Origin: Podarcis muralis
Lineage: Eukaryota
Reading direction: 5' to 3'
Length of the DNA: 64,000 nucleotides
Assembly (NCBI RefSeq): GCF_964188315.1
Contig: NC_135655.1
Location: 67,580,001-67,644,000, forward strand
Shown: positions 4,936 to 55,382 of the stretch, one piece after another
How the letters are laid out: every line of letters begins with the position of its first letter
Numbering within the stretch: position 1 is the first letter of the stretch
Position numbers and translations under genes: made by a program
Notes under the pieces: model-generated
Seen by the model: only the letters and a program-made list of their open reading frames with translations
Databases searched by the model: none
What the model was told of the DNA's origin: nothing

Positions 4936-4947
4936 GTTGTGTTATTG

Positions 4948-5095: not shown

Positions 5096-7004
5096 CTGTA
5101 TTAATCATCCTTATAACTCTTTTGTAAGGTACAGCCATGTAGATATCACCATATTACAAGGGAGGCTAGTGACTTGACCAAGGCCAAGGCTGCTTGATGA
5201 GCTCATGATTCGTTGGCTGATAATCCTTAAGTCACTATGCTGTACTACACTCAAAATCTAATAGAAGCTGTTTTAGTATACACATCATGTATAGCTATTT
5301 TAAACTTTTCATCATGTAAGTTAAATATAACAGAAGGACAATGTTTCCCCTTTAGAATGGAAAAGCCCTAAGCATTTACTTCTAATTTTTTTCAGCACGC
5401 CGGATGCATTTAGGCCAATATTTGTAAAACATTCATCACATTTTCAACAGAGGCTGGGACATTTCCCCTTATAAGTAATTAGATTGGGTTTTGAATCAGC
5501 TCTGCACAAGCAGCTTCTTCTATCAGCCCTTGTCTTGACAGCTCCTGCTTAACATTTAAGATTTTAAGTGAATTCACGCTCCTTGAAGCAGTGTAATTAA
5601 TAAGACTTCAGAAATAGAACAAAGACTGACAGTGTTTAGACAAGAAAGGGAAGACCAATAGGTTTGATTAATTGGAGTTTACTCAGAAACTGGATAATTG
5701 CTGTTTACAAACCATATTAAAGCATGTGTTCAATCAGGCTGGGGTGTGTGTGTGTTTAAAAAAAACCATATGCAGCTTCATTTTGTAGTTAAATTACGGA
5801 ATTAATAATGAAATCAAAGAGACTGTGAAGGAGCATCTTAAATGTCACCTCCTGTTTCTAACTCATTAAAATGTTCAGTTGTTTTTAAATGTAAAGCTCT
5901 TTTTCCCCTTTTAGTCTCATGCCATAGTTGAGCTTTGCACTTTGTTGGTCTTTAAGGCATCATCTGTGCTTTAGTGGCAACATAATTCTCAGGCAGCATG
6001 TGCTATACCTGCCTGACCCCACCCCCCTTGCGAATGGCCTGACAAAATAAAAGAGTAATCTAATTCACTAATGAAAGACCAACAGGGTTGTAGGAAGGGC
6101 AGGGGAAAAGAAAACCTCTACTGTCATATCTCCCAAGCTGCAATTAGTTGGTGACTGTAAAAATGAAGATTGTCTATTTTTTCAGAACAGATATAGCAAA
6201 GCTGTTTAAAAGTATGGTGTTTCTACAGTAAAAAATACTGTTTATTGGTTATCTTAAAACCAAATTTTCCAATATGTATCATATTATGACATAGGATATA
6301 TATTTATACAGAAGAGTCAATTTCTTCAATTCAGTTCCACATTTTCCCCTCAATGTGTTTGCTCTGTCCAGAGCTCCTTTCTTCTTGAAACCTGGTAAAC
6401 TAGGAGAATTTCTAAAACTAATTCCAGAACTATGAAATGTTCCATTTGCCACAGATTTTTATTCCTTCAGTTCATTTGTATTACTTGGCCACTCCAAGTT
6501 GCCAACAAGCGAAGTGTGTTGATAAAATACTGCCCCCCAAAAGAGGGACAATTACAAAATCCTGTCTGTCAAACTCAGCCTTGAATTTAGTCTGTGTTGC
6601 AGGCTTTGTTTCCAGAGCAGAGCCGATAATGTTTGAAACTAGAAATATGTTCCTCAAATTCTTTTTAAGCTTCCCTTATGGTCTGCATGTACTTTTTATT
6701 TGGCCAAAGTTTGTGTTCCTTTTCATTCTCTTCATTTGAACCAGACCTTTTTTTGGAAGGAAGCCTTCTTACCTCTACCAGCTTCTTTTACTCTGCTGGA
6801 ATCCTTTGTTAATCACTCTGACATGTCCTCATGATACATTTCCTGATTTGTAGTGTGTGCTCACATCTGGCTCGTGTGTGTGTCCATGTGTGGCAGTGGC
6901 AGTGTTTTATCAAGGTACACACACGTCGATAAAAAGCCACACAAAAAGAATATTGTTGCAACCATCAGCATAATCAATCAAGATTGCCTTTTTCTGGCCT
7001 TCAA

Positions 7005-7135
7005 AATCATAGAATCATTGAGTTAGCTTTCTAGCCTTCTGGTCTAACTCCCTGCTCATTGCAGGAATCTCAGAGCTAGAGCATCTTCCCCCAACAGTTG
7101 TCTGTCCATTCCAACCTCTGCTTGAAGACCTCCAA
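7005..7135 (-). mobile_element. CR1 LINE 3' end fragment
   Basis: aatcatagaatcat tail (reverse of the ATTCTATG repeat) and ccaacctctgcttgaagacctcc, similar to the reverse of the CR1 at 45934-46532. Confidence 0.7.
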
Positions 7136-8120
7136 GCTGTAATACTAAACATACTTGGGAATGAGCCCCACTGAAAACAGCAGAATTTATTTCTGAGTAA
7201 ACTCCCATAGGAGTGCATTGCCAGCAAGGCAGAACCCACCACCTGCCTAAGTAATTAGTTTCATTATCAGTGTGTTCATGTGCATCAGCAAACAGTGAGG
7301 AAATTATGGAATGAAGTTAAGCAACAGAAAGCTGCAGCACACCACACTCTGCACAAAACTGAGAGCATTCTTTAAAAACAGAACAAAGCAGAATGGTAGA
7401 TGGTGATTCCTAATGCATTATCTCCACTTTGAAAGCAAGACCAGGTAATTTGGAATTCCAAATTCCGGGCACAATTTGGATGACATTCAGAAGTTTTCTC
7501 AATTATTATTTATTCTCTTTCTGGTACAAAACAAATGGTGGGATCTTTTTCATTATTATTCTACATACATTTATACTACTGGTGATTGCTTCTTACTTAT
7601 TTGTGTAGAGGTTTGATGCCCTTGAGACCAAAGCAAGCCCGAGTCCTTGTTTTGAGGGCACTGCAGATTTCTAGGGGGTGGGGGAGCAATTGTCGTCTTG
7701 TAAGCATGAATAGCAAAGCTCTTTCTTGTCTCCCAGCATATGCTGGATGTAATTAGGCAACTGCCCAAAAAAATAGGCCTTGTAAACATCCTGAATACAT
7801 GCCACATTCTCCTAGCCTCGGATGCTGCCAAATGCCTAAATGAGTGTTCAAGCCAAAAGGCCTAAATGTATAAAATAGATCTCTAAACAGAATGCTTTTC
7901 TGATATAGAATATGAATAGTGGGTGGACAAGCCTGGAAAACTCAAGGCTCTGTTTCAGAATGCAGTATTCAGATAGCCTGTCACCTATTCTCAATAGAGA
8001 TGGGACGAGAGACCAGACTGCATTACCTTGCAGGAGAGCACTGTGGAAAGGTGCCCTCTTTTGTTTCTCTTTGTCCTAGAAGAGGGTCTTCTGTATTGGT
8101 TTTATTTACTCGGTACAGTT

Positions 8121-8665
8121 CATTCATTTTTTATTTATTATAATATTTATTAGCATTTTCATTTAAAATAAAACACCGTGTGATTATACAGGCATACCTT
8201 GGGTTGAATATGCTTCATGTTGAGCGTGTTCGAGTTGAACTCCGGGTTTCGCTGCTTGCGCATTCACAGACGCTCAAAATGACGTCATGCGCAGAAGCTG
8301 CGAAAAGCGATGCGTGCGTGCGCAGACATGCCGTCGCCAGTTACGTTTGCTTCTGGATGTGAACGGGGCTCCGGAACGGATCCCGTTCGCATCCCGAGGT
8401 ACCACTGTACATATCTTTAAATTACCTATATTCTGACTCTCTCTAGTCGACGACTTCCCCCTCATCCCTCCCAACTGACATTCTAACTTCCAATTATAAT
8501 TTCATCCGCATTTCTCATTCCCCCCATCTACCTTTCCTTTTACTTTAAGATTCCTTATCATTGTAAATAAGTTTCTATTTTTAACTGACAAACCTTTAAG
8601 CCAGTCCTGTTAGTGTTAAGTGTTTACAATATTCTTTCAAATAAATAATAAATTTACTCCAGTCT
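8121..8665 (-). mobile_element. 5'-truncated L1 3' end with 16-bp TSD, interrupted by a MITE
   Basis: TSD tttactcggtacagtt at 8105-8120 and 8666-8681. The minus strand encodes DWSKFIIYLKEYCKHLTLTGLA*, similar to the ORF2 end DWKKFKIYLKNCCK at about 43770-43828. Confidence 0.85.
8189..8407. mobile_element. Tc1/mariner (Tigger-like) MITE nested in L1
   Basis: TA on both sides, ends cagg(c)ataccttggg / cccgaggtaccactg, CpG-rich interior. Confidence 0.85.
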
Positions 8666-9256
8666 TTTACTCGGTACAGTTTAGGTCATCTTAACACAAA
8701 TGCCCTAGTGTTTTCACTGCAAGTTGTGGTTCCTTTTGTTCAGCTTCATCACGTAAATGTGGCTCCCACGTTTCTGATTTCATTCGAAAAGCATTTTGTT
8801 CTTGCAGAAGACACTTAGTCACAAGCATATGGTGCAAAAATTCACAGAACTGAGTATGTGGGCATCTTGCCTTTGTAAGGATGGCATTGGCTGCAATCAT
8901 AAGCAAACTCACTGCTTCTTACTTCCAAGTAAAGTGACATAGGGTAAGATTAAATAGCTGAAAAAGGATGCAGTTACTTGTCCACTATAGTTGTATGTGT
9001 GGAAGTCTACAAAGGTACTCACATAGACTTTGGCTTGAGTTTCCCAGTGACTATCAGAGTTAGATTTAGGTTTATAATTCAACTGAAGCACTGAAGAGGT
9101 GCATAGTCATAGTACACTTTTCACACTTAAAGGACTGTAGCAGATTATAAACCTCAAATATTTCCTTGTAAATTTTGAAATCCAACAATAGGCTGAAAAT
9201 ATTGACATTTTGGATATAATGGAATTCACTAAACTGGCCAATTTATTTGTTTCTAG

Positions 9257-9442
9257 GTATGGCAGTGTGGTGGCAGCGTTGAAGTTCTTCCTTGCTCTAG
9301 GATTGCCCACATTGAACGAGCTCATAAGCCGTATACAGAAGACCTCACTACTCATGTCCGAAGAAATGCACTCCGAGTGGCTGAAGTCTGGATGGATGAA
9401 TTTAAAAGCCATGTTTATATGGCGTGGAATATTCCTCAAGAG
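9257..9442 (+). CDS. GALNT18: GALNT18 internal coding exon (catalytic domain C-terminal part), 186 nt, phase 0-0
   Basis: ttctag|GTATGG acceptor and GAG|gtgggt donor. Translates VWQCGGSVEVLPCSRIAHIERAHKPYTEDLTTHVRRNALRVAEVWMDEFKSHVYMAWNIPQE, recognised as near-identical to mammalian GALNT18. Confidence 0.96.
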
Positions 9443-9529
9443 GTGGGTCATGAATGAACACTGATACGATCACAATATTTTCCAATTCCCCATATTTTTG
9501 TGAAAAGAATGTTCAAAAATGTATTATAC

Positions 9530-9688
9530 CAGGGCTGTCCAACAAGTAATCCTGGTCGACTGCGGGATCCCCCCCCCCCCAAAAAAAAGCTCAACAACTC
9601 TGGTCAATCCAATAGGTAGATCACTGCCAGTTGTTTATTTTTTTATAGAGCTTGTAGATCACAGTCTCTTGGAAGTTGGACAGCCCTG
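9530..9688. mobile_element. hAT-type MITE
   Basis: Perfect 14-bp TIR cagggctgtccaac/gttggacagccctg and 8-bp TSD tattatac/tattatag. Confidence 0.88.
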
Positions 9689-9696
9689 TATTATAG

Positions 9697-9830
9697 GTAG
9701 GTAGCCGTGTTGGTCTGCCATAGTCGAAACAAGATAAAGAAATTCCTTCCAGCAGCACCTTAGAGACCAACTAAGTTTGTTATTGGTATGAGCTTTTGTG
9801 TGCATGCAAAAAGTACAGATGCACACACAA
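9697..9830. mobile_element. Penelope-like retroelement terminal fragment
   Basis: gtagccgtgttggtctg...gcaccttagagaccaac...gagctttt resembles recalled reptile Penelope terminal repeats. A (CA)n tract follows. Confidence 0.55.
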
Positions 9831-11874
9831 TCACACACACACACACACACTTAACTCTCTGCAACAAACAACAATGTGTTATTCAAATACAGGAGCTAGC
9901 TTAACACAACATGCCAGGCAGGCTATTGCTTCATTGTAAAACATCTTTATCCCCAAATACTATTAATTAGGTGAGAACTGAAACGTGGATTTATTACATA
10001 CGTATATCAATTCATATTTATTCCTTATAAAATAATTATTTCTATATACCAGTGTGAAATGCTTCTGTGTCTCCAAATAATTTAAGGCTACATAAACCAG
10101 CCATCATGCAGACACCCAAATTCAGTGTAGACATAAAATTCTCGTGGTCCCGCAAGTATTTTCTGCAACATACTCTTGACACACTAATACTGCATTACTG
10201 GTGGATTTATTGTTGTGCGGTGCTCCCCTAATGTCACTACATTACTGCTGTCTGGAGGAGCAAAAAAAATGGGACAAAAAGAAGCCAGAGCATTTGTGGT
10301 GTAAAAGGTTACAGGATTTCAAAAGGAAGTTACGGAATATGCGCTGGTTGGAAATGGAATCTTTGCAACCAGCACAAAACTTTAGCAGGCACAAACAGTA
10401 CTGAGGGTGCGATCACATGTGACCTCTTCAAAATCACCATGGGCACAAATAATCATGAATGCACTTGAAAAAGGACATCTTGAGGGACCTTCAATCTCTT
10501 AAGCATACTGGAGCCTGGAAGCCTGCTATAGGCTAACCCTCTTCTTCCCTAGCCCCCTTTCCCTGTTGCATGTGTGCCTGTGGTCCCATCAACACTGGAC
10601 CCATGGGGCAAGCATCCTTGTGCAGTGCCAGGTCTTTTTCAAGTCACTATCAGCATGAGAAAGGTGGAGGGTGTGTGTGACAATGATCCCTTTCCCTGCA
10701 GGTTATGAGGACTGCAGGTATTTATTGCCTGAACAAGGCTCATTTCCTAACCTACCTGATAATAAATATTTTAATGTAAAGTTTATTTATTCTTTATTTT
10801 GTTTGAGTATTTTGAGCTGTGTGTGACGACATAATCTACAGTAAGAATGTCTCATTTTACTTCCTGTCAAAGACTGGTCCTGAATTTGCATTTAGATGCC
10901 TCTCTAGAAATCTCTACCGCATAGCTATAATGAGATAAATTATTGATCTCCACTTACAGGCTCTTTATGAAACTCGTGTATCTTGAACTCCACAAAACTG
11001 TGTTACACCAGCCAAGGCTTAGCTATAAAATGCAATGAAAAGGGGAGGGGGGAAAGGTTTTGCAAATTTCTTCAACAAAAATGGCAACTGAAATCATTGT
11101 TGTTGTTGCGGTTAATTAAATTTCTATGCCGCCCATCATCCGAGGACCACAGGGCAGTTCACAATATAAAAATATGAAAGATAGTAACCAAGAAAAACAA
11201 TACCCCTCACAGACACAGAGTTTAAAGGGCCATAGATTGCTTAATTAGCCAAAGGGCTGGGAGAAGAGGAATGTTTTTGCCTGATGCCTAAGGATATGTA
11301 ATGTAGGCAGCAAGCGAGCCTCCCTGGGGAGAGCATTCAACAAACAGAAAAAGGTGGGCAGGGTTTCTAATTGTTGCAGAGAAATACGAAAGCCAAACAT
11401 CCACATTTGCCCGACAATGGAATCTTTGAAATACACCATACCTTTGCCGGTAGAAAAGTGGTTTCCAGGACAACTTGCTTTTATATATACCACTTGTTTT
11501 TGAATCTTAGAATTGCTTCAATGACATACATGCAGCAATGACATTATTACTGTGGAACTTGATTCAAAATCCATTGAAGTCAGTGAGAATTAACCCACTG
11601 AATGTGAAATATGCTGGATCAGGCCCCCAAATGATGGTGTCTTTTATGTTTAAACACACTGACACAAATACCTCAGATTTTGTATGAAATACCTATTTAT
11701 TTTAGGCAGCTAAAGTATGCTAATCATGTTTCAGTGCACATCCCTGTGTTCTTCCACACACACACCCCTTCACTGAACTGTACAAAAGAGCACGGAGAAT
11801 TGTAACACAAACTGCCAGAGAGCAGGAGGATGGCTTTTATATCTCTGACATGTTTTTTTGGTCAATGTGCACAG

Positions 11875-12012
11875 GATTCTGGAATTGACATCGGTGATAT
11901 TTCTGAGAGGAAAGCCTTGAGGAAAAAGCTCCAGTGCAAGACCTTTAGGTGGTACCTTGTCAGCGTATATCCAGAAATGAGAATGTACTCAGACACTGTT
12001 GCATATGGAGTG
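11875..12012 (+). CDS. GALNT18: GALNT18 coding exon (linker after catalytic domain), 138 nt, phase 0-0
   Basis: acag|GATTCT acceptor and GTG|gtaaga donor. Translates [46 protein letters not shown], with the GalNAc-T CKxFxWYL motif. Confidence 0.96.
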
Positions 12013-12559
12013 GTAAGAGTCCTGCTTATTTACCTTGATTATTCATAGCTGTGGGAAATAATTCTCCCAGATAACAGCCACATTTATTGGTTCATTTATT
12101 TAACTGTTTGGCTGCTTGTTGTTTGACATAGGTGTGATTGTGCTACTCTGCCTCACACATGCATGCGCTGCTGTATCATCTCTGTTTCTGGTGTGTTTTG
12201 AGTCCTTTTAAAGTAGAAACCTGCTGCCCACACAGGTACCGAGCGTAGTCGTCTGTAGCCTACAAGTGGAGGGGCAGAAAGGAAAGAGTTATCTTCTTTG
12301 TTGGGTCGCCTGAGGGAAGTTCTTACTCGCCCTATGCCAGTGGTTATTTATAGAGCTATTTAACAATAGCTAATGTGATATGACATTTAGAATGCATACA
12401 TTCTTCACATTGCGGTTTGTTACCACCTATTACAAGCCATGGTTAGCCTGCTGGGCTGTGTTCGGACATTCAAACAAATCACACGTTGACTAAACAAATC
12501 ATGTCTTAGTGTTATCAGTGAAAAACACTGAGTTGGGGACAGATTCATGTGAGAGAAGA

Positions 12560-12935
12560 TGGGGCTTCAAATATCCTCTTCCTAAATATTTAGGGCTACA
12601 TTTGTAACAGCCAGCATTTTGAGCTGAGCCCAGAAACCAGAGCAGATTGAACAAAGTTAGAATAAGAGACTTGGAAATACAAACCCTGGAAAATTGTGGC
12701 TTTTGCAAGAGTGTTTTCTGTACTCCTTTCAAATTCAGCCCGATGTAGAGTGCATTGTAGTCATCAAATCTGGATGTGACCAAGTCATGTGTGCAATGGC
12801 CCAATCGGCTTTCTCTAGGAAAGATGGTACACCAAATGAATTTGAGCAAATCCCTCATAGCTGTAATTGGCTCAAGGCAATCCAGGAGCAATGCAGGTTC
12901 CAGAAGCACCCCAGACTGGAATGCATCTCTAGGAC
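12560..12935 (-). mobile_element. Old L2 ORF2 C-terminal fragment
   Basis: Peptide HDLVTSRFDDYNALYIGLNLKGVQK resembles the L2 motif HALVTSRLDYCNALYxGLPLK. Confidence 0.65.
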
Positions 12936-14219
12936 ACCTGAAATTGTATTTTTTTTATTAATAATATAATACTTCTTAATGCCCAGATGGCTTTTGAGCA
13001 GTTTACAAAACATAAAAACAAACTGTATAACATTGTTAAACTAAGGAATAATTAAAACTACACCATAATTAAAATATGGAATAAAACGATACCATTAAAA
13101 TATAAAGGGCCATGATTAAAATGTGCACCAAAACAATCCCATTAAAAGCACAGAAATTAAAACAAGAGAATTGCTAGTCCCTCAGTCTTGTAGCTCCTCT
13201 GCTAGATAATGCGTGATGAATTTGACATTTGTGCATTTAAATCCCACTTAAGGTTCATTGTATTCCACGTAGTACATTTTCTCATGAAACTCAGCATTGA
13301 AAAGATGAGAAAGGTAGCAGTGTTCTAGCTGTCAGAAAGTGCCTCCAAATAAAATTAATAAAATAGATTTTTATTCTCAGGTTAACAGCCTGTTCCTAAT
13401 TATGTATACATGTTAGTCCAATTGCAGTGCACTTAATGAAAGTTAAAAATAAAATAAAAACTTACAGTATGACCACAGGCAAAAATAATTCTATGTTTGA
13501 CAAGATGGTTTCTTTTTTAAACACCAGAGATCTAAAGTTAACTCAGACTCTCATAAAAACTGAGTTGGTTTCTCACTTTATAAAAAGAGTGTTTCTTATT
13601 GTTTGGGATGATGCCTAAGGCCTCTGTGATCAAGGATATAAAAACGGAGGTAAAAACAGAACAAGCCCATGGAATAACTGAGTTTTCTGTCACACACTTG
13701 TTGGATAAATCCAACATTTATTTGACAGGCATAAATTAAAAGCTCAGATCAGCCCTGCAAAGGTATCAACTGTGCCAGGCTTCTCAAAGAAGTTCTGAAA
13801 AAAATCTGAAATACTAAAGGGTACTGGTGCAAGACATGAAATTGTCTTGACACAGGAAAGATAAGTAGTGAATGCAGCTGTTCATCTAGTTTCCAAGTGT
13901 ACTTTTGTCACACTGTGTGCATTGCTTTTCTAAAATCATTTGTCCTCTAGATTTGTCAGAAAAGCCTTTGCAAATTGACATATTTGACCAAGCCCTCATT
14001 GGTGTTGATACATGCAGCCACATTGTTTTTAGGGGATTTATTCACAGGCTTAAAAGTTCAGGATTTATGTTGGTATTTCTATCTGTCTCCATTATTTTCA
14101 TGAAACGGAGACCTTTTGGAACATGAGAATCTGCCTTTCACCTGATCAGCTCAATGGCCCATCTAGTTCAGTCTTGTCTCCACAGATTCCAGGATCACTC
14201 CTGGAGTTACATTGAGGAG

Positions 14220-14475
14220 TCTTTCCCAGACCAGATTTATAGATGTATTTAAAAGGAGATTAGACAAAGACATGAAACATTAGTTTATTGAGAACTGCTA
14301 GTCATGATGGCTTATACTGTCTCCAGGATCAGAGGCAATATGCCTCTGAATATTAGTTTCTGAGGAACTACTGTAGGAAAGGAGTTTACTCTCAGGTCAT
14401 GCATGTGGGCTTCCTATCACAATATAGATTAGACATGCCATTGGAATAATCTGACATGACTATTCTTATGTTCTC
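14220..14475 (+). mobile_element. Degraded CR1/L3-type LINE 3' end (TTCTTATG tail)
   Basis: tttaaaaggagattagac...gcctctgaatattag...gtgggcttcc...ttcttatgttc. Related copies lie at about 49985-50172 and 54685-55382. Confidence 0.6.
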
Positions 14476-14512
14476 TTCTTACGTATATTGATATGCCAAG
14501 AATAGAATCATA

Positions 14513-14757
14513 CAACAAAACAACAACACCACAAACTGGCTTATAAATATAAAACCAAATTTACTAGAATAGTAGCTAGAATAGAGATAGACTTAGAACC
14601 ATTAAAACAACAAACCTACTAAGGTGCCATGTGCAAGACAAAGCCAGGATATACTGTAAACATGGAGTGGATAAATGTACAACTCTATCTTAACAAGTTA
14701 CATGTACAGTAAACGTTATACAGACTGGATAAAGTTTGTGGTGGTGTTGTTTTGTTG
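14513..14757. mobile_element. Unclassified TIR element flanked by TA
   Basis: 28-bp inverted repeat with 27/28 match at 14510-14537 and 14733-14760. Confidence 0.5.
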
Positions 14758-15509
14758 TATTATTATCACTGTCACCACATTTGATACTTTATATATATAT
14801 ATATATTTAAGAATAGAATCATGACATGCAAGGTTGCTTGGATCCTACGATAAATTAACTTGGAGGTAATGGAAGCCACCTGTTCTCCCCAAAAAGAATG
14901 TCTCCTTGGTCTTGGGCCCTCCTGAACAAACCGTGATGGAATGCAGGGAATTGCTATTGGGATGAGGGGATGAGGAACTTTACCTCTCATAAATGTTCTT
15001 TTGAGCAAATTTCCTCACTGCTTTAGCATCCCCCAGCCCACAATCCACCTTGTTCAGGAGGGTCTCTGATTCCCCCTGAGTGGCTCTTTTGGTGAACTGG
15101 AGGGCATGTATAGGGGATAGGAAATATCCTTAACTTATCCTGTCATAAGTACTAAGAGTCGTGGCTTTTCCTTCTTATCATTTAGGACCTCCACTAAAGA
15201 GTAACCAAGAAAAAGCCAGTCCCAGAAACAATACAATAATAAGTAATCATAAATTTGCTTGTGGTGTTGGGATCCTAGTGTTACAAAGATTTTAGAGAAT
15301 TGTAATCTTGAATGTAAATGGTGCATTATAGATGATGCTGTAGCATCACATTATTAAACATTCAAGCAATTTTGTGTTTTACTGCCTATAGGTAGTTAAA
15401 ATTTTATTGCCAAGATATAACTTTGATCAAGTATAATACTTGTCCTATTTTAACAAGCATGTATTCTCTTTTCCCTCTCTCTTTTTCTTCCACTGCCTGT
15501 ACTCTGTAG

Positions 15510-33100: not shown

Positions 33101-33631
33101 AGTTTATAAACCAAGATGGAAAACATTTTCTCAAAAACAAATTCCATTGAAATCAATGAAATTTACTTCTGAGTAAATACCTAAGGATTGGCATGAGTGA
33201 CATCTTTATTATTACTTTGAAGCAAGTGGTTTCATCTTATAAAAATATTGCTTGCTGTCAAGCACTTTTCAGATGTGCTTATGAAGATGAGAAATCTTCA
33301 CAATAAATAACTGCTTTGTGTGAGCTGCATTTTGGAGCTTCCCTGATCTGTAACCTGAAAGCTGTCACTGGAGATAGAACAGCAAATGGCACCTTTGCCC
33401 CATGCCCACTCAAGATACATGAGGGGCGCCAACTTGCCCCCCACATTGAGGGGGCCCGGCGTCATTTGACGTCATATGCATGTCATGCGCAATCTGCGGG
33501 GAGCGCAACTAGGTGCTCCTTGTACAGTTTCCCATTGCCCCCTGCTGGTTTTGGGGGGTAGGGAGTGCAGAGGGTGATGCAAAATGGTATTAGTTTTTTC
33601 AATCAATTTCTCATAAAATTTACCCATCTTA

Positions 33632-33979
33632 AAAGGTAAAGGTACCCCTGCCCATACGGGCCAGTCATGTCCGACTCTAGGGTTGTGCGCTCATCTCACT
33701 CTAGAGGCCGGGGGCCAGCGCTGTCCGGAGACACTTCCGGGTCACGTGGCCAGCGTGACAAAGCTGCATCTGGCGAGCCAGCGCAGCACACGGAAACGCC
33801 GTTTACCTTCCCGCCAGTAAGCGGTCCCTATTTATCTACTTGCACCCGGGGGTGCTTTCGAACTGCTAGGTTGGCAGGCGCTGGGACCGAGCGACGGGAG
33901 CACACCCCGCCGCGGGGATTCGAACCGCCGACCTTTCGATTGGCAAGTCCTAGGCACTGAGGCTTTTACCCACAGCGCC
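33632..33979 (-). mobile_element. Full-length Sauria SINE
   Basis: Tail aaaggtaaaggtacccctg, tRNA-like head with B-box (ggattcgaacc read on +), TSD acccatctta at 33622-33631 and 33980-33989. Confidence 0.93.
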
Positions 33980-36900
33980 ACCCATCTTATATAGGGTTAA
34001 AATCACCAGTCTTGTTCCTGTATCCCAGAAGCTCATGTCCCCTTCTTCCCCTTTTGTTCTTAATCCTAAATGTGTATATTTATTAATCTTCATCCCTAAA
34101 TAGAGAAAACATGACTTCATGTAACATGATTAGTGTCTCTGACTCTCCATTAGGCAGATAAATTATAGGATTCTTTTGATCCTTTTAAAAAAAGTAATTA
34201 TTTATCAGGAATAGTTTGTTTTTAATTTTTAAAGTCCACCTTTCCTTATTTCTATTTGAGTTTTGCTGTGTGGTGGGGTTTTTTTCCAGCATTTTACATT
34301 GTTTCAAAGCAGTCAGATTTCAAATTGTTGACTTGAAATGTGAAGCTTGGATTTTGCCTGACATGTTAATTAGAACACCTGCAGGAAAAGATAATCAATG
34401 AAGTGAGATTAATTAGTAAATTGATTCAGCTAGAAATGCCAAAGCAGCTAATCTCCAGGGGGAGATAGAGCAAACTAGTTCCAGATCTCAAGTAATTGTT
34501 ACACTTCAGGAACTTTGAACTGTTAGTTCATTAGCTATTTTCAACTGGTGAGCAGGAAAGTATGAGGTCTATAGGCAATAATAAATAAATAAATAAACAA
34601 ATCACTAGCTCTAGTCTTCTCCAGTTTTAGAGAGGCTACATTTGGACATCATGGTAATACCATAGTTTCCTGTGATGAGAATAAGCCACAGTGAATCTCA
34701 GGTCTGCATGCTCCCCTGTCCTTTCTCCTCCTTTGTCACAGTTGCAAGGAAGAGTGCAGATGCTGTCATTTGCAATTTTCCTTAGCCACAGTTTAGTGTT
34801 ACATGAACCCTAAACTCTGGATAATGTTGACTGTGGTTTATTGCAACAAACCAGCTTCATAACCCATGATTTGAAGCCATTGTGCTTCAAACAAACAATT
34901 GTTAACATCAGCCACAGTTTGTCATGTTTGGATGACGTGACATGCTATGGTTAATTTCAGCTCCTCTCTGTAGCCACACTAGAGGACATAGAGGTGGGAG
35001 AAGTGTAGATCACCGCAGCTAGCTCATTCTCAGCATGCTAAATCAGGAGTGGGAAACATTTTTTAGCTCAGACACTGTATCCACCACCGAGCAGTCACCT
35101 AATATCCTTATAATGTCTGGAGAGTCGAAGTTCAAATTCAAGTCTCTGTTTGCTATTTAAAAAGCAGCAGGCAGAGGCTTGTCCCCAGTCTTGCACAGTG
35201 GGATCATAGTGCTAAGATCAGAGTATGTCTCTGCTGCTGCCTTTTATAATCAAAGTCTCAACTTGCACTCCATTAAATAACAACACTTGGTAATACTTAC
35301 ATGCAGACTTTTCTGCACAGGTATCTCTAGAATGATCAGACCAATAGATAGGAGTTGGCTCTTAAAGATGTTGGTGGATCGTAACACCCCAAGTACCCTC
35401 AAGGAATGCATTCTAGACAGACAGACACGAGCTTACAAAAATCAAGTAGTGATGGAGAGGAGAATTCAGGTTCTGCTGAAGAGAGGCATAAACAGGGCAG
35501 GCTCCGCAATCAAGTGTGTGTCGGGGGGGGGGGGCAAGGCAGGCTCCTCCCATTGGAATGCCATTGTTTGAGATACCAGAGACACTTATGGATGTGGTCA
35601 TGAAACAGACACATGAAGCATGTACCATACATGAAATATGTTCACTGGACTGGTGTGTGTTTGTGTGTGTAAATAGATGGATAGATAGAATAGAGATATA
35701 AATAGATAGATTCCTTAGTGTGCGTAGGAATTGAAAAATGGGAGAGATTTAAGAAAGACCTAGAAGTTTCCTGTTCAGAATTAAGATTCTACACACATTG
35801 GGGCATTTCCAGACTACATTAACTACCTTCAGTGTCTGGGCCAAGCACCATTCTGGTTGCATTAATTGTCAGTTGAATTTATAAAATAAACTATGCTCCT
35901 ACAGATTGCTATTTTGATCCCTTTATCTTTGGTGGTGCACCTAATGCAGCATGGCATCCCTAGCCAATAAAAAGGGTCTTACCAAGCGGTACCCCTAGTC
36001 CTTTATCACGGCCAGTCCACTCATAAGGCAGCCACCTTGTTCCATCCACCGCACCACCAGAGCAGTGAGGAGAAGTTGTGACCGTGGTTTCCAGCAAGAG
36101 CTCACAAGAGCTGCACAAGACCTTGGGAGAGTTCAGAAACAGCTCATGGGATCTCACCAGAAGCCACCGCTGCACAGCCCTGGTAAGCGAGACTTCGGCT
36201 GAGGGGACAGGGGCAGCACCTTCCCATTTCACCTCAGGTGGTGAAATGGGACAGGCCACCACTACTTTTTATTATTTTCCTGAGTTTGGCTGAGGCTTAC
36301 ACTGTTCTCTCCAAAGTCATTGTGAATAGGAGACGGATAGGATCCTGTGTGACTCTAGAACAGCCCTGTTGTATGTAGAATGCAGTAGCACCAAAGATTT
36401 ATAAGAAATAAGGCAGTACTATATCATTATTTATGTTCTCGGATAAATGTAAATATACAACTTCTTTATACTCTAAGGAATTAAGGCAATATGTATTTGT
36501 ATTTCTTAAGATAGTAACATGAGAGCATAGAGTTAGTGCTGGTATAATGCAGAGATAATACCACTGTACTGGCTTTGGGGCCCTTGGTGTTTTTTCAGTT
36601 GTGTACTAAAAGCTTAAGACAAAGCCAGAGATTTGTGAAAACAGTAGGTCTAGTTTTTGCCCCTAAGGAAGAAATTCAATTGCTAGAGGGTTCAAGTTAC
36701 AATCTGCGCCTCTGCATTCATAGCAGTGGGATTGGGATACTTAGAAAGCAAGAGTCTCTTTTGCATGAATCCTGACAACTGGCCAAAAAAAAAAAAAGCT
36801 TTTTGTTGTTTGAATGCTGGTACATCACAATGGTTGAAAAAGCAGAGATATTTCCACTCACAAACTAAGCAATAATTTTATCCCTCTATAAAGGCTTTGT

Positions 36901-42141: not shown

Positions 42142-44114
42142 CGGAGCCAGACATTACAAGTTAAGGGCATTTGCAGATGACCTAGTATTAACCTTGCAAC
42201 AGCCAGATACTAGTACTAAAAGAGTATTAGAACTAATTGAGATATTTGGTCAAGTAGCAGGATTTAAACTGAACAAACAGAAAACGAAAGTGTTGGAGAA
42301 AAACCTAACATTGGCGGAAAAAGAGAAGTTTCAGAGTGAAACAGGTTTAGTGATAACGAAAAAGGTGAAGTACCTGGGGGTAAACCTAACATCCAAGAAT
42401 GTGAACTTATTTAAGGACAATTATGATAAATGTTGGACAGAAGTAAAGAAAGATCTAAAAATATGGTCAAGGTTGAGACTCTCATTGCTAGGCCGAATTG
42501 CTGTTATCAAGATGAATGTATTGCCTAGAATGTTGTTTTTATTCCAGACGTTGCAGATCTTGGTTAAAATGGACTGTTTCAAGAAGTGGCAGAAAGACAT
42601 ATCTAAATTTGTCTGGCAGGGCAAAAAGCCCAGAATAAAATTTAAGATTTTAACTGACGCAAAAGATAGAGGGGGGTTTGCCCTGCCGGACTTAAGACTC
42701 TATTATGAATCGGCGGCTTTTTGCTGGCTGAAACACTGGCTGCTTCTTGAGAATACAGACATTTTGGATCTGGAAGGGTTTGATAATAGATTTGGCTGGC
42801 ATGCATACATATGGTATGATAAAGTTAAAGTGCATAAAGGTTTCAAAAACCATATTGTTAGGAAAGCATTATATAATGTGTGGATGAGGTACAAAGACTT
42901 ATTGGAAAGTAAAACTCCCAGGTGGTTGTCACCAATGGAAGCTAAAGAGGTGAAAAAACTTAATATGGAGTCTAAATGGCCAAAATATTGTGAAATTATA
43001 GAGCAAGACGGTGAAAAAGTTAAATTACAGAGTTATGAGAAACTAAAGTCCAAGGTACGAGACTGGTTGCATTATCTTCAGATAAATGAGATATTTAAAC
43101 AGGACAGGAAAATAGGCTTCCAGATGGAGAGGTCAAAATTAGAAACAGAACTGTTAGAACCCAATACTAAGAATCTGTCTAGAATGTATAATTTGCTGTT
43201 GAAATGGAATACACAGGATGAAACGGTGAAATCAGCTATGATTAAATGGGCACAAGATATTGGCCATGACATTATGTTTGCTTACTGGGAACAGTTATGG
43301 ACCACCGGTGTTAAGTTTACGGCATGTAATGCCTTAAGAGAAAATATAATGAAAATGATTTACAGGTGGTACATGACCCCAGTCAAGCTTGCAAAAATTT
43401 ACCATTCGCCCAATAATAAATGTTGGAAATGTAATGAGGCTGAAGGTACTTTTTATCACCTTTGGTGGACCTGCCCGAAGATCAAAGCCTTTTGGGAAAT
43501 GATCTATAATGAAATCAAGAAAGTCCTTAAGTGGACTTTCTCAAAAAAACCTGAGGCTTTTCTCTTGGGCATGGTCAACCAAGTGGTGCCAAGGAAGGAC
43601 AGGACATTTTTTATGTATGCTACTACAGCAGCAAGAATTCTTCTGGCAAAGTATTGGAAGACACAAGAACTACCCACTCTGGAAGAATGGCAGACGAAGG
43701 TGATTGACTATATGGGACTGGCAGAGATGACCGGCAGAATCCGTGACCAGGGGAAAGAGACAGTGGAAGAAGACTGGAAGAAATTTAAAATATATCTTAA
43801 AAATTGTTGTAAAATTGAGGAGTGTTAAGATGTTAAGGAATTAAGAAATAGAGAATTGCAGCTGAAATTAATAAGTTAAAGAAAAAAGAATCTAATGAAA
43901 GTGATTGAAATAATTAATTAATTTAAGGAGTTGCTGAAGAAATGTAAAACAAGGATGCATAAAAGGGGAGGTATGGGGAAGTCCGGGAAGTAAGGTGTAT
44001 GAAAATAAGATTATGAAATTATACATGTTTATATGTTTGTATGTTTTTGTTTTGTGTATGGTTTGTTTTTATTATGTGTTTGGAAAATCAATAAAAATTT
44101 ATTTTAAAAAAAAA
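42142..44114 (+). mobile_element. Young 5'-truncated L1 (ORF2 RT C-half, CCHC knuckle, 3'UTR, poly(A))
   Basis: 16-bp TSD acagaatataaacaca at 42126-42141 and 44115-44130. The frame is open from YKLRAFADDLVL (RT catalytic motif) through KCWKCNEAEGTFYHLWWTC to a stop at 43828. AATAAA at 44090-44095 is followed by an A-tail. Confidence 0.97.
42143..43828 (+). CDS. L1 ORF2 C-terminal fragment (no start codon, transposon-derived)
   Basis: The 544-aa ORF in the track plus an in-frame upstream extension GARHYKLRAFADDLVLT. Confidence 0.85.
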   Translation, partial: GARHYKLRAFADDLVLTLQQPDTSTKRVLELIEIFGQVAGFKLNKQKTKVLEKNLTLAEKEKFQSETGLVITKKVKYLGVNLTSKNVNLFKDNYDKCWTEVKKDLKIWSRLRLSLLGRIAVIKMNVLPRMLFLFQTLQILVKMDCFKKWQKDISKFVWQGKKPRIKFKILTDAKDRGGFALPDLRLYYESAAFCWLKHWLLLENTDILDLEGFDNRFGWHAYIWYDKVKVHKGFKNHIVRKALYNVWMRYKDLLESKTPRWLSPMEAKEVKKLNMESKWPKYCEIIEQDGEKVKLQSYEKLKSKVRDWLHYLQINEIFKQDRKIGFQMERSKLETELLEPNTKNLSRMYNLLLKWNTQDETVKSAMIKWAQDIGHDIMFAYWEQLWTTGVKFTACNALRENIMKMIYRWYMTPVKLAKIYHSPNNKCWKCNEAEGTFYHLWWTCPKIKAFWEMIYNEIKKVLKWTFSKKPEAFLLGMVNQVVPRKDRTFFMYATTAARILLAKYWKTQELPTLEEWQTKVIDYMGLAEMTGRIRDQGKETVEEDWKKFKIYLKNCCKIEEC

Positions 44115-45024
44115 ACAGAATATAAACACATATACACAGTGCCTCTCACCAAATGTTTTACCTATGGTGCCTTGGCCCCTCTGAACTGTGCCCCTGCATT
44201 CTCAGTACCTAGGACTTTCCACCCCCTTCTGAATGATTATAAAACCGATCTGGCACCTTTTTGATAGTAAGCGCAAGTGGTCTATTTCTAGACAATTCTG
44301 TTATTCTATCCTGATTCAAGTGGAGCACATCCCTTTTGTATAGGTCTATCTTGTCTGAAAATATTCTCCAGACCCACCCCCCTCAACACCATTAAATAGA
44401 TGATATCTAAAAACTTATGCTCTGTACAAAACACAAAAAGATAGATGTTCTAGTTCTTGCTTTCCAATTAAGACAGTGAAGTTCAGTGGGTAGCTAACAA
44501 GAAGAGGGTATTTTGGTAGCAGCACATATACTATGGAATAGCTTCTCCAGAAAGGCCCACCAACTACCTTTTTTATGGTATTTTCAGCACCAGGTGAAGC
44601 ATCAAGTCTTTTAAACTTTTCTGTTAAATTCATGCTGTGCATTGATTTATGCTCTATCTGTTGTATCTTGCTTACTTTTATTGTTTGTTAACCTGTAAAA
44701 TCCTGAACTACATATATTAAATTAAGATGACGAATACAGATGGTAATACCCAGGTAACTTACCACAGTTTGCATGAACTATATTGTCCTACCAAGCAGGT
44801 AGCTTGATCTGCCTTCTCTCACCCCTGTTTGATAACTTCTCAAATGATATTTTGAAAACTTTAAAAGATCACACTGCTTCTTACTAGAAAAAAAAGACTT
44901 TTGGTTGCTGAAGCGTGGTGTGAGATTCAGTTCAGGTCCATGCATTAACTCTTGCCATTGGTTTCTGATAGAAATGTTGCCTGCATCTTCAAAGCCCTGA
45001 ATGTGTTCTGTTTTCTCATTGCAG

Positions 45025-45189
45025 AACGTCTATTACACAGGTAACCAGCAGTTCCATGTGGGTGTTCTAAGTCCTACCATTGATGATGATGACAACAGAT
45101 GCCTGGTAGATGTGAACAGCAGACCCCGACTAATTGAATGCAGTTACGCCAAAGCCAAAAGGATGAAGCTTTACTGGCAATTTACTCAG
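45025..45189 (+). CDS. GALNT18: GALNT18 coding exon (lectin beta repeat), 165 nt, phase 0-0
   Basis: ttgcag|AACGTC acceptor and CAG|gtgatt donor. Translates NVYYTGNQQFHVGVLSPTIDDDDNRCLVDVNSRPRLIECSYAKAKRMKLYWQFTQ. Confidence 0.96.
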
Positions 45190-45394
45190 GTGATTTTTAT
45201 TTTTATTTCAAAACAAAACACGAGTTTGCAGCTTTCACTGAATTATGAATGACTTCTCAGCTCTGCAAATAAGAAATGACTGTGTTACTTTGAAAAGTAA
45301 ATGGTAGATGAGATGGGAAGCTTCTGCCTCTGGACGGTGTTACTTCAGACTGCAGGTATGAAGGCTTAAACCAGGGATAGGGTACCATTTTCAT

Positions 45395-47180
45395 TTTTTT
45401 AAAAAAAAATAATTTTTATTAAGTTTCATATTGCCAAATTAAACATACCAAACCAATTAGTTCAAATTATAACAATACATATCATGTAATGAAATTATTT
45501 TCCGAATTATAAATTTTTGTGGGGGGTACCCATGCTTCTTGATCGGCAGGAGTCCAATCCTCAACTGTTTTCTGCTGCTTTCATATTAAGAATGATGTTT
45601 CCAGTCTCCTCTTCTCAATGCTTATCATTACTCATTCTCCTTTTCTTTCACCTCCAAATTGCTCTGCAAGTGGGTTGAAAAAAACAGTCTTGTTTGTATT
45701 TCTGTGTGGACTTTGTACTGCTCTCTCATAAATCCCAATAGTTCAGGCAGTTCCGCTCGAGCAAGCGATCGCCATCTTGTCGTTCGAATGAAATACAGTC
45801 CAAAAGCTCGCTCTTTAGCTTTCCCGACCTGTTGCATCGTAAATTAGTCTTTTTCCAGGAGGGCTGCCCCTTCCAGTTCGCAATCTCTTCGAAAATAATA
45901 AATCTTCGGCTCGCCTTCCCCAAGACCAAACCTCTGGGCCTCATCAATAGGAGTATAGCATCTAGATCAAGGGAAGTAATAGTGCCACTGTATTCTGCTC
46001 TGGTCAGACCTCACCTGGAGTACTGTGTCCAGTTCTGGGCACCACAGTTCAAGAAGGACACTGACAAACTCGAACGTGTCCAGAGGAGGGCAACCAAAAT
46101 GGTCAAAGGCCTGGAAACGATGCCTTATGAGGAACGGCTAAGGGAGCTGGGCATGTTTAGCCTGGAGAAGAGGAGGTTACGGGGTGATATGATAGCCATG
46201 TACAAATATATAAAAGGATGTCACATAGAGGAGGGAGAAAGGCTGTTTTCTGCTGCTCCAGAGAAGCGGACACGGAGCAATGGATCCAAACTACAAGAAA
46301 GAAGATTCCACCTAAACATTAGGAAGAACTTCCTGACAGTAAGAGCTGTTCGACAGTGGAATTTGCTGCCAAGGAGTGTGGTGGAGTCTCCTTCTTTGGA
46401 GGTCTTTAAGCAGAGGCTTGACAACCATATGTCAGGAGTGCTCTGATGGTGTTTCCTGCTTGGCAGGGGGTTGGACTCGATGGCCCTTGTGGTCTCTTCC
46501 AACTCTATGATTCTATGATTCTATGATTCTATCCTGCAACACAGGTCTCGTAACAAATCTCCATTCTAACTGCGTCACAAGAGAGCCCTTCTCTTTCCAA
46601 GTCCTTTACAGAGTTAAACCTTTAAATTCATATTATTCCCACACAGATCATTTTCAGTCCCATTTGCCAATTAGTTGCTGTGACGAGTCTTCTAAGAGGG
46701 AGAGTTACTAGTTAATCACATAGAGGGGGGGGAATAAAAAGCCACCCCCCCTTTGAGTTCCGTTGCACTCCAATCCACATACCAGCTTGTCTGTAATACT
46801 TTGATGTAATCTTCCGTCTCAGTCGTCTTCATTTCAGCGGTACAGTTGTTAGCAGATCAAAACCTCCTGCCTCTCTTGAAGCATGTGCGTTATCTTTCAC
46901 CAATTTTTTTTCTTTTAAGTAACGCAACTAGTTTCGCTCCTGGAAGTAGCTTCGGAGGAGTCCCGAGACTCGCCAAGGGTTGTGCACCCAGTGCCTCACC
47001 CCCTCCTTCTTCCGAACTCAGGGGTGATTTATGGCAACAGCGGGTGATAACTACATCTCTCCCCCCTGGAGAGATGTTAGGGAGACTGATATACTCCCCA
47101 TAATCAGCCTCTAATTACCTCGTGCGAGCTGGATAGATGTTAATATCCGCCATCTTCCAAGGCGCCCCTAGCGGCCCCCC
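45395..47180 (-). mobile_element. ORF-less L1-derived element (5'UTR-like promoter fused to L1-type tail) containing a nested CR1
   Basis: 11-bp TSD accattttcat at 45384-45394 and 47181-47191. The minus strand starts GGGGGGCCGCTAGGGGCGCCTTGGAAGATGGCGG (YY1-type AAGATGGCGG) and ends AATAAAAATTATTTTTTTTAAAAAAA, similar to the tail of the L1 at 44090-44114. Confidence 0.8.
45934..46532 (+). mobile_element. Young 5'-truncated CR1 LINE (ORF2 C-terminus and (ATTCTATG)n tail)
   Basis: Open frame [19 protein letters not shown]...[11 protein letters not shown]...FKQRLDNH, tail ctatgattctatgattctatgattctat, possible 3-bp TSD cct at 45931-45933 and 46533-46535. Confidence 0.95.
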
Positions 47181-47228
47181 ACCATTTTCATAGCAAGGTA
47201 TGCATTCCCTCATGGACAGCTTGCCAGT

Positions 47229-47290
47229 AGTGGGTAGGGCCAGATAAAAAGTGGGTGGGGCCAGATAAAAAGTGGGTGGGGCCAGATAAA
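47229..47290. repeat. About 3 copies of a 21-bp tandem unit agtgggtggggccagataaaa
   Basis: Direct inspection. Confidence 0.9.
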
Positions 47291-49113
47291 TGTCTCATAA
47301 CTTTGTATAATAAGCTTCATTCTAGTCACATGGAAGCCAGAGGTTTATGCATGCCCTCCCCAAAACATCTTTTCCTTTTCCATCCAGAAAAGCAAGAGAC
47401 ACTAACACAGTTCAAGGACATAGTCCAGCAAAGCAAAAGCATTTCAGGAGGCCATAGATCAGGGCTGGTGAGGGAGCAACCTGGGAACAGTCCCAAGGGT
47501 TGAATAGAGAGGCCTCAGCAGTCATATTTGGCCAGTAGAAAAGAGGTTCTCCATTTTTGGTTTCCATGACGGAATGCTCCCCCCACAAACCAAAAAAAAG
47601 ATCCCAACCTATAGAAAACTTAGGGAGACACCAGAGAGAAGACTGGATAACTGGGAGGGGGGGTCAAAATTATTTATGGATATGCATAGTGGCATCCCTT
47701 TTGAATGCTTGTCACCATCTTTACAAGTGGTGGTGTCCATGAAATAATGCTGCAAGTTAAAATAGATGTCAGAAAACACTCCTCCTAACGCCCACAGACA
47801 AAGCTCTGAAGAAGGGAAGATGAAGCTCCTTTCTTTGTCTCCTGATGATAAGAGGCAAAGGAATAATTAAAGGCATGCTGTTCAGAAAGGATTGTTTTGC
47901 TAATACCCAGTGTGATTAAAGTGTTGTTGTTTCAGAACACATAATGTGATGCAAAGTAGGTTTGCATGCTGTAAGCTACAAGGGAACTAATGAGAGTAAT
48001 CAAGGACTCCGAGAGATGTTTGCACATTGTATTGTACTTGCTTCCATTTCATCTAGCAAAACGAGTATGCCTCTCTGAGAAAAGGAAAAAAATCTCTTTA
48101 TAAGAATGCTCAACTAATCATATTTTAACATTTACAACACTGTGAAAATGCACAGGGTAAGGCAGTGCTGCTATCCTGAATGAAACTATAAACTTGAGAG
48201 TAGTCCTTACGGCCTACGTGAAATCACAGTGAAGTAAATTTTTTTGAGTGCCTGTATGAAAACAGAGTGCTTTAAATATCCTGCTACCCAAAACTTTCCA
48301 GTGGAGTTAAAGCTCAAGCCAAGAACAATAACAAAGCTTCAAACAACTTTCAGTGGCCTTCCAAATCCTAGTTTCCCTTTCCATGCTATTCATTATTGTT
48401 AAATTCAGCTTCTTATCCTAGCATTTGGAAAGCACATATAAAGCCCAATCACCTGGGAAGCTTTTGACTACGATTACGGAGTCATTGGGGTAGTGAAGAG
48501 CTGGTGGTACTGGGTTCCAAGACAGCTGGAAAAGGTCTGTGAAACAAGCCCTAACACAGCATTTGGAGGGAAGGCCAAAGGAGAAGTGTTGCAGTCTTGT
48601 TATTGCATTTATTGTAAGAATATTTAAAATAATAATAATAATGTTGCATTATAAACTAGGTCGTAAAAACAGAGCTGCTCACGCACTCTCCCAAACTCTC
48701 CACCTGTATCAACCCAAAGCCCATGTGGGTATGAATATAGCTAAATAGATTGTTTCCAAGGAATTGGTTTCAGCGGAAACTAATTATATAACAGTTTAAA
48801 TGGCAACAGCATTGCATTTCGTAAATACATTCAAATTGTGAAGAGACTGAAGTTTGACTTTTGTCCATACCTAACTAAGTGTTTGGAAGGAATGGGGAAG
48901 AGTGAGGGAGCTGTCAAATTGCAGCTTAGAGTGAATCAAAGATTAAATATCTCAATGGGAATATGAAACCGTTTGTTAAAAACAGACCAGAATGTCTATA
49001 TTTCCACACACCCTCTAAGAGAATTTTCCTAAGAGATATAGTAGCAGCCGCTGCAATTGTAGTTAGCCATGGTGCTTACAACTTGAAGGCAACTACTGTA
49101 CAAGCAGATGTCT

Positions 49114-49154: not shown

Positions 49155-49156
<2 letters not shown>

Positions 49157-49528
49157 ACGCAGGTGTCACTGTGGTCTAAACCACTGGGCTTCTTGGCCAG
49201 GCCTATCAGAAGGTCAGTGGTTCAAATCCGCTTGATGGTGGTGAGCTCCTGTTGCTCTGTCCCAGCTTCTGCCAACCTAGCAGTTCAAAAGCATGCCAGT
49301 GCAAGTAGATAAATAGGTACTGCTGCGGTGGGAAAGTAAACGGCATTTCTGTGCGCTCTGCCTTCTGCCACAGTGTTCCATTACACCAGAAGTGGTTTAG
49401 TCATGCTGGCCACATGACTCGGAAAGCTGTCTGTGGACAAACGCCAGCTCCCTCGGCCTGAAAAGTGAGATGAGCGTCGCACCCATAGTCGCCTTTGGCT
49501 GGACTTAACCATCCAGGGGTCCTTTACA
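49155..49528 (+). mobile_element. Sauria SINE (older or different subfamily)
   Basis: Head ggacgcaggtgtcactgtggtctaaacc...ggttcaaatcc, core gcaagtagataaataggtac, tail ggggtcctttac. Confidence 0.88.
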
Positions 49529-54684: not shown

Positions 54685-55382
54685 ACAGAAAAAAGAAAGT
54701 ATTCCTGCAGTGCATAGTTGAACTTTGGAATTAGCTCCCACAGCAGGCAGCGATGGCCACCAACCTAAAAGGTAAAGGTAAAGGTACCCCTGCCCGTACG
54801 GGCCAGTCTTGACAGACTCTAGGGTTGTGCGCCCATCTCACTCAAGAGGCCGGGGGCCAGCGCTGTCCGCAGACACTTCCGAGTCACGTGGCCAGCGTGA
54901 CATCGCTGCTCTGGCGAGCCAGAGCCGCACCTTCCCACTAGTAAGCGGTCCCTATTTATCTACTTGCACTCGGTGGTGCTTTCGAAGTGCTAGGCTGGCA
55001 GGCGCTGGGACCGAGCAACGGGAGCGCACCCCGCCGCGGGGATTCGAACCGCCGACCTTTCGATCGGCAAGCCCTAGGCGCTGAGGCTTTTACCCACAGC
55101 GCCACCCGCGTCCCGGCCACCAACCTAGATGGCTTTAAAAGAGGAATAGGCAAATTCATAAAAGAGAGGACTGTCAAAGGCTACTACTCACGCAGGGTAT
55201 GCTCTGTCTCTGCAGTGGGAAGCAGTAATGTTTCTGAACACTAGTTTCTGGAAATTACAGGGGAAAGTGCTTTTGCGCTCAAATCCTGTGTGCACAGGCC
55301 TCTGGTTGTCTGCTGAGAACAGGATGCTGAACGATGTGGGTCATTGGCCTGATCCAGCAGGCTCTTTTTATGTTCTTATGTA
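54685..55382 (+). mobile_element. CR1/L3-type 3' end (TTCTTATG tail) interrupted by a Sauria SINE
   Basis: gatggccaccaaccta[SINE]gatggctttaaaagagg...ggcctgatccagcaggctc...ttatgttcttatg. Confidence 0.75.
54768..55114 (-). mobile_element. Full-length young Sauria SINE
   Basis: 13-bp TSD ggccaccaaccta at 54755-54767 and 55115-55127. Highly similar to 33632-33979. Confidence 0.95.

Follow-up and report, generated by a model that had tools for sequence, protein, structure and literature searches.

A probable L1-mobilised, ORF-less retroposon family in Podarcis, represented by a 1.2-kb copy that a CR1 insertion has split

The stretch of DNA analysed here (hereafter the window) comprises 64 kb of the Podarcis muralis genome (NC_135655.1, positions 67,580,001 to 67,644,000), and all positions below are counted from its first letter. 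Between 47180 and 45395 on the minus strand it carries a non-coding repeat unit that is flanked by an exact 11-bp target-site duplication (TSD) and interrupted by a fragment of a CR1 element. The unit is intronic and runs antisense to an expressed plus strand exon at about 45025-45186 (45021-45234 at its widest), and of the two ends of the element the 3′ end is about 200 bp away from this exon, the 5′ end 2 kb. In a stranded RNA run (X23) this exon was covered to a depth of at most 8 and on one strand only. A previous reading of the same DNA, made from the letters alone (the sequence-only reading), had described a promoter 2 kb downstream of a GALNT18 exon and pointing antisense toward it. Distance and orientation were as described, and the exon itself could be resolved only to GalNAc-transferase-like: its translation presumably represents a ricin-B lectin domain, which would fit a GalNAc-transferase, and a PDB sequence search with it returned nothing useful. 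Several smaller repeats lie in the surroundings. Three tandem copies (perfect to 97%) of a 21-bp unit (AGTGGGTGGGGCCAGATAAAA) are found at 47229-47290, 38 bp from the 5′ TSD, and this bin showed raised depth and indel variants in the DNA runs. Within the otherwise single-copy flank, positions 47375-47481 were covered at about 20x in each of the two DNA runs and therefore hold a small unannotated repeat. Another repeat, GC-rich, about 350 bp long and probably a SINE, occurs in the window at 33631-33983, 49155-49527 and 54766-55114 with 75-83% identity between copies, and also twice in the unrelated P. lilfordi locus L001 (6506-6865 and 12809-13166).

The limits of the unit are given by a single pair of 11-mers. 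By direct reading and by script, exact copies of ACCATTTTCAT were located at 45384-45394 and at 47181-47191 and nowhere else in the 64 kb; when up to one mismatch was allowed there were six matches against 3.0 expected, two of the six being the exact ones. The single exact pair (47191-47181 and 45394-45384) therefore places the unit at 47180-45395 on the minus strand, with the duplication reading ATGAAAATGGT in the orientation of the element. On the 3′ side the start of the repeat marks the end of the single-copy flank contigs of two runs, which stop at 45395 and 45426. Read along the minus strand, the left junction runs ...ccttgct ATGAAAATGGT and then GGGGGG, so that the unit opens (47180-47147) with six G, the 18 nt CCGCTAGGGGCGCCTTGG and a YY1-type box, AAGATGGCGG, at 47156-47147. 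A second box, CAAGATGGCG, follows on the same strand at 45779-45770. The motif AAGATGGCG has two occurrences in the window against 0.11 expected, both of them within the element and on the same strand, and a self-comparison of the unit gave no monomer repeats that would link the two AAGATGGCG boxes. At the right junction AATAAAAATTATTTTTTTTT passes into AAAAAA and then into ATGAAAATGGT accc.... The poly(A) signal AATAAA lies at 45420-45415 and the A-tail at 45400-45395, the latter counting 6 A, or 7 with the first base of the TSD. The TSD, the G-run with AAGATGGCGG and the second CAAGATGGCG are thus all located where the sequence-only reading had put them, and of the AATAAA and A-tail that it gave as the end of the element both are present, the tail with only 6-7 nt. 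Hallmarks of L1-mediated target-primed reverse transcription are accordingly found in the AATAAA signal, the short A-tail, the exact TSD, whose 11 bp lie within the expected 7-20 bp, and the A/T-rich target; the nick site deduced from them, TTTTCAT/AG on the bottom strand, is non-canonical (CAT/AG as against the classic TTTT/AA). For one diverged contig of another copy the alignment stopped at 47181 and 249 further letters remained unmatched. Position 47180 may putatively be the 5′ end of the family, with a truncation point as the alternative.

Inserted into the unit on the plus strand, and hence antisense to its host, is a 5′-truncated 3′ fragment of CR1 at 45934-46533. It measures 600 bp and was recognised by a 204-aa plus strand ORF carrying CR1 reverse transcriptase C-terminal sequence, by a terminal 8-bp microsatellite (TCTATGAT)3.6 at 46504-46532, by a depth above 1 million in the DNA runs (about 40-55 thousand-fold) and by its joints. 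DNA contigs of two runs and three RNA reads cross the insertion site with joints that lack the CR1, from 45933 to 46534 and from 45931 to 46536 (TA between). Because these CR1-less joints belong to other copies, the CR1 entered after the host copy had been inserted and is private to that copy. A nested CR1 had been proposed at 45934-46535; the insertion is real and its limits differ by 2 nt.

Excision of the CR1 leaves 1,186 nt, in which the longest stop-free stretch counts 74 codons and for which Pfam searches with ten stop-free pieces returned no match, in agreement with the 1.18 kb free of L1-like ORFs that had been noted before. No ORF1 remnant, whether intact or decayed (coiled coil, RRM, CTD), was detected in the unit by ORF, Pfam or tblastn analysis, and a protein search with an 85-aa antisense ORF of the 5′ head gave no candidates. 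An Rfam search (E<=1) over 45000-47600 gave one chance snoRNA match straddling the 3′ end of the element and nothing else. We considered and rejected a SINE, as the same search gave no Pol III head of the tRNA, 7SL, 5S or snRNA type and 1.2 kb is too long for one. The 1,186 nt divide into three parts. The 5′ half (46534-47180, 647 nt) is non-coding; its first 340 nt or so are CpG-enriched and are the most repeated of this half, and the observed/expected ratio of CpG is 0.66 in the first 300 nt against 0.27 in the whole window. In the middle part (45556-45933, 378 nt) this ratio is about 1, with 1.04 at unit positions 648-900 around the second CAAGATGGCG. The 3′ module (45401-45555) is AT-rich, with GC falling to 0.29-0.31, and carries an L1-type terminal box, GAAACTTAATAAAAATTATTTTTTTTT, at its end; it was delimited by the drop in GC, by a step in repeat depth and by alignment to L1 tails. 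Both the richness in CpG and the switch in sequence near 45500-45560 had been remarked upon in the sequence-only reading, and both were borne out, the latter by the GC drop together with the repeat depth, which changes abruptly by a factor of about 20 at 45555/45556.

To place the unit in the genome, positions 44700-47900 were compared with two DNA contig sets (X1 and X38), a further, small contig set and the raw reads of an RNA run, and the depth of the flank, 29 in X1 and 17 in X38, was taken as single copy. Apart from the CR1, raw depths within the element ranged from 370 to 15,000 and from 170 to 4,800 in the two DNA runs. Expressed as multiples of single copy they amount to 10-19x at 46626-46839, 21-48x at 45556-45876, 48-106x at 46840-47160 and about 170-530x at 45395-45555, multiples that give orders of magnitude only, summed contig depth being a rough proxy and not a copy number. 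The steps suggest a modular origin with head, body and L1-like tail, with the qualification that the 88% likeness cut-off could alone yield a profile of high 5′ and low middle depth, and that the very high bin at 45449-45555 may include a short unrelated abundant repeat with loose ends at 45502. At this position (about 1079 of the element) several contigs of other copies match up to that point and then differ (reverse complement of the consensus ...CCAAATTACAAAA), which suggests a subfamily or else another abundant repeat with its likeness confined to the segment at about 45502-45555.

Other copies of the unit were present as separate contigs with 89-97% identity to the element. A 476-nt contig of another copy covers 45407-45869 at about 91% identity, and the composition switch at 45500-45560 is therefore part of the family structure; diverged contigs bridge both this region and the CR1 site, so that dispersed copies have the same internal arrangement. 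Intermediate-frequency variants, common to several contigs, were found at many positions in the DNA runs, and the sharing of variants by subsets of contigs fits the existence of subfamilies. In word-index searches both halves of the element were recovered from many runs, of 8 and 5 studies, with the same species label, and parts of it were weakly present under a second species label (10% of words). Within the 64-kb window there were no further copies apart from those of the CR1, and a 23-mer of the head had 0 exact matches among metagenome contigs. The unit is one copy of a non-coding retroposon family of about 1.2 kb with tens of copies in the Podarcis genome.

The relation of this family to L1 was examined against eleven L1 loci of about five lineages, obtained by two ORF2 searches, an ORF1 profile search, and cluster and contig look-ups. 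They represent lineage A (L001 and L006), lineage A2 (L007), lineage B (L002, L003, L004, L009 and L010), a fourth lineage (L011) and contigs of other species (L005 and L008). A lacertid ORF1 profile (lineage A2) found 1,825 proteins in the protein library. In blastn searches (word 7, E<=0.01) the unit had no match to the L1 5′UTRs, ORF1s or ORF2s of lineages A1 (L006), A2 (L007), B (L003, L004 and L010) and the fourth (L011); several of the loci include ORF1 and upstream sequence, and some of the 5′UTRs are short or possibly truncated. Searches with tblastn, using unit pieces of at least 18 aa against the L1 loci, gave chance scores only, and a comparison with the ORF1-bearing loci (L003, L004 and L006-L011) gave no similarity. 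The only blastn matches of the unit were 33 nt at the 3′ terminus of L1-A and 42 nt at 76% in L002, the latter away from the L1 3′ end. The box AAGATGGC[GC] is absent from about 140 kb of lizard DNA containing the sampled L1s. The complete L1-type promoter end of the sequence-only reading thus could not be upheld, as the 5′ end of the unit matches no sampled L1 5′UTR and the box does not occur in those loci. The label mini-L1 is likewise unsupported, since there is no homology to any sampled L1 5′UTR, ORF1 or ORF2 and the L1 tail is limited to 30-35 nt. Because the sampling of lineages is incomplete and some 5′UTRs are short or truncated, a parent among the unsampled L1s may exist, unlikely as we hold this to be.

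What the element has in common with L1 are its last 30-35 nt, which contain a terminal box GAAAnTYAATAAAAA that is shared by the Podarcis L1 lineages A, A2 and B. Lineage A ends in ...TTTGGAAAATCAATAAAAATTTATTTT(A)n, A2 in ...GTAAAATCAATAAAAAAAAATT(A)n and B in ...TTATGAAAATTAATAAAAAGAATT..., and the element in ...ATATGAAACTTAATAAAAATTATTTT.... Compared with dinucleotide shuffles, the last 166 nt of the element gave z scores of 5 with L1-A and of 3.2 with L1-B. After removal of the last 36 nt the signal was gone for three of the four L1 tails, and a weak residual was left against the L1 copy of the window itself (z 3.6, 3/300 shuffles). The similarity to the L1 tail at 44090-44114, which had been put forward earlier, accordingly extends to the last 30-35 nt and not to the rest of the unit. 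Judged from these alignments, the 3′ terminus of the element appears to be of L1 type, and body and 5′ head are without demonstrable homology to the sampled L1s.

Some observations were made on the L1 loci themselves. The L1 copy of the window (42142-44114, plus strand) is 5′-truncated and belongs to lineage A; its 544-aa ORF2 C-terminal frame is still open and its 3′UTR ends in AATAAAAATTTATTTT(A)10. Its DNA shares 91% identity with a copy from P. lilfordi, and its ORF2 C-terminus 94-95% identity with P. muralis and P. lilfordi proteins. Podarcis L1 lineages with about 54% identity in ORF2 keep a 3′ box (G/T)AAAAT(C/T)AATAAAAA after a GT-rich stretch (window 44090-44114; L001 12290-12326; L007 about 9760-9790; L002 about 11545-11582). 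Such a box, similar in lineages so diverged, might have a role beyond that of a poly(A) signal. Locus L001 was considered as an orthologous locus and rejected, the match being confined to the L1 part, and L008 and L009, which were reached via ORF1-like proteins of 187-239 aa and considered as HAL1-like elements, turned out to be ordinary L1 fragments. Upstream of the L1 in L010 of P. muralis (882-3251) there is an open frame of 790 codons whose start is typical of a Copia/gag-pol-like polyprotein.

Transcription was followed in the one stranded RNA run, X23, of which 12% of the reads were used; the library was recognised as stranded because the adjoining plus strand exon was covered only by read pairs with the first mate on the minus strand. 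RNA depth over the element was 0.2-5 on both strands, with summed bin means of about 17 for sense and 18 for antisense. The few reads on the element carried variants of other copies rather than those of this copy, and the three RNA reads across the CR1-less junction were antisense. Minus strand starts near 47180 had been suggested as something to look for, and no cluster of read starts was seen there in X23. The X23 sample contains no positive evidence for promoter activity of the 5′ head, be it of this copy or of the family. Another run labelled 'RNA?' (X25) was rejected as evidence for expression and treated as DNA because its ratio of CR1 to element depth equals that of the DNA runs.

Taken together, we consider the unit to be probably one copy of an ORF-less, polyadenylated and non-autonomous Podarcis retroposon family of about 1.2 kb that is mobilised by L1, a copy which was later split by CR1. 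The sequence-only reading had left two alternatives, a spliced or deleted L1 transcript and a non-autonomous family parasitising L1. Its statement that the whole unit was inserted as one ORF-less RNA agrees with the single exact TSD pair and with the preserved junction between 5′ half and 3′ half in other, CR1-less copies, and of its two alternatives the second is favoured by the 10-500x depth and the contigs diverged to 89-97% identity. The template would have been an RNA made from a source copy by Pol II, polyadenylated and ending at the AATAAA of the element itself. L1 ORF2p supplied in trans would have captured this transcript and copied it at a nicked A/T-rich site (bottom strand ...TTTTCAT/AG), in the manner of SVA (PMC3287187) and of processed pseudogenes, and reverse transcription at the nick would have produced the 11-bp duplication and the A-tail. 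The CR1 inserted into this copy later, in opposite orientation. The family itself would be modular, with a CpG-rich 5′ head, a family-specific non-coding body and an AT-rich 3′ module that carries the L1 terminal box, and its founder may go back to template switching or to a deletion. In the head, the G-run and AAGATGGCGG about 25 nt downstream would correspond to a YY1-positioned Pol II start, and the arrangement resembles the YY1-positioned start of human L1 (L1Hs) and of many housekeeping genes.

The same arrangement can be turned into an argument for an internally deleted or spliced autonomous L1, whose 5′UTR and promoter would be seen in the head and whose 3′UTR would be seen in the 3′ module. 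The order of G-run and AAGATGGCGG mirrors the 5′ end of human L1, and the terminal box is of L1 type. That the 5′-terminal 340 nt and the 3′-terminal 160 nt are more abundant than the body would be expected if both were common to a more numerous parent; lizard genomes furthermore hold many L1 lineages, of which about five were sampled. However, beyond 33 nt the unit has no similarity to the 5′UTRs, ORF1s, ORF2s and 3′UTRs of L001-L011 in blastn (word 7) and tblastn searches, AAGATGGC[GC] does not occur in the 140 kb or so of L1-bearing lizard DNA, and the likeness of the tails is lost without the last 36 nt, save for the weak z of 3.6 against the L1 of the window. We therefore regard descent from a deleted or spliced L1 as unlikely. 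A AAGATGGCGG close to the start is also typical of the starts of housekeeping genes, and the copies could accordingly be processed retrocopies of a single host gene, transcribed by Pol II from a YY1-type start into an mRNA or lncRNA; L1 would have made every one of them independently from this source, and none could spread further. The poly(A) signal, the A-tail, the TSD and the lack of any TE protein signature would be expected of such retrocopies as well, but they would account poorly for tens of copies with variants common to subsets of contigs, for a depth that climbs toward the 5′ end rather than dropping, for the step-like boundary of the 3′ module and for a unit without any coding potential, so that we hold this explanation to be improbable. 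Hardly any weight can be given to a one-off chimera or a chance juxtaposition of two separate insertions: it is supported solely by the composite appearance of the unit and by the change of depth at 45555, whereas one exact TSD pair encloses the whole unit and other copies keep the junction both across the CR1 site and across 45500-45560.

An L1-mobilised, protein-less retroposon family, which is the reading we prefer, has counterparts in other vertebrates. SVA elements of hominids are composite, non-coding retroposons that are mobilised in trans by L1 (PMC3287187). The Podarcis family resembles them in its kilobase size, the lack of a protein of its own, the poly(A) signal and A-tail, the L1-type TSDs, the occurrence in multiple copies and the apparently modular build. 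It differs in that it is unrelated in sequence, has no VNTR, Alu-like or LTR-derived parts and is much lower in copy number, and its mobilisation in trans and its transcription by Pol II are deduced from the features of the copy. A stricter lizard analogue of SVA, in which a Pol II-transcribed, YY1-headed and protein-less element with a body unrelated to L1 mimics the L1 3′ box GAAAnTYAATAAAAA, is a more demanding proposal that we regard as rather unlikely. HAL1 (half-L1) is described in PMC5753468, which cites Bao & Jurka 2010, as a non-autonomous L1 derivative that encodes only ORF1p. The Podarcis unit shares with HAL1 that it is non-autonomous, dependent on L1 and longer than a SINE, and differs from it in having no ORF1 remnant and no shown homology to the L1 body, as HAL1 keeps ORF1. 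SpIREs (spliced integrated retrotransposed L1s) and internally deleted L1 copies can be recognised as L1 to either side of the gap and are not known to amplify. The unit is similar to them in its L1-type ends, in the missing coding sequence and in its insertion as one RNA, whereas its 5′ side matches no sampled L1 and it occurs as a family. Chimeras formed by template switching of L1 (U6-L1, mRNA-L1) have a clear 5′-truncated L1 3′ part. In the unit, too, one TSD pair encloses a 5′ part of cellular type and a 3′ end of L1 type; in contrast to those chimeras it is L1-like over 30-35 nt only and belongs to a family of copies with this structure. By analogy, template switching could have given rise to the founder.

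Long non-coding retroposons that depend on L1 have been documented in primates (SVA), and a form bearing ORF1 (HAL1) in mammals. No description of long non-coding, L1-dependent retroposon families in squamates was found in the searchable literature; the kind is known from the SVA and HAL1 classes of L1 parasites, and within that literature the Podarcis member appears to be undescribed. At the locus studied here, the insertion has brought CpG-rich sequence of YY1 type into an intron, in antisense orientation and some 200 bp away from the expressed lectin-like exon. If the 3′ box were indeed mimicked, the L1 reverse transcriptases of lizards would recognise 3′ sequence and not merely poly(A). 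Squamate genomes have many L1 lineages running at once, and such a family could reveal which of them it exploits and whether the conserved 3′ box is of importance.
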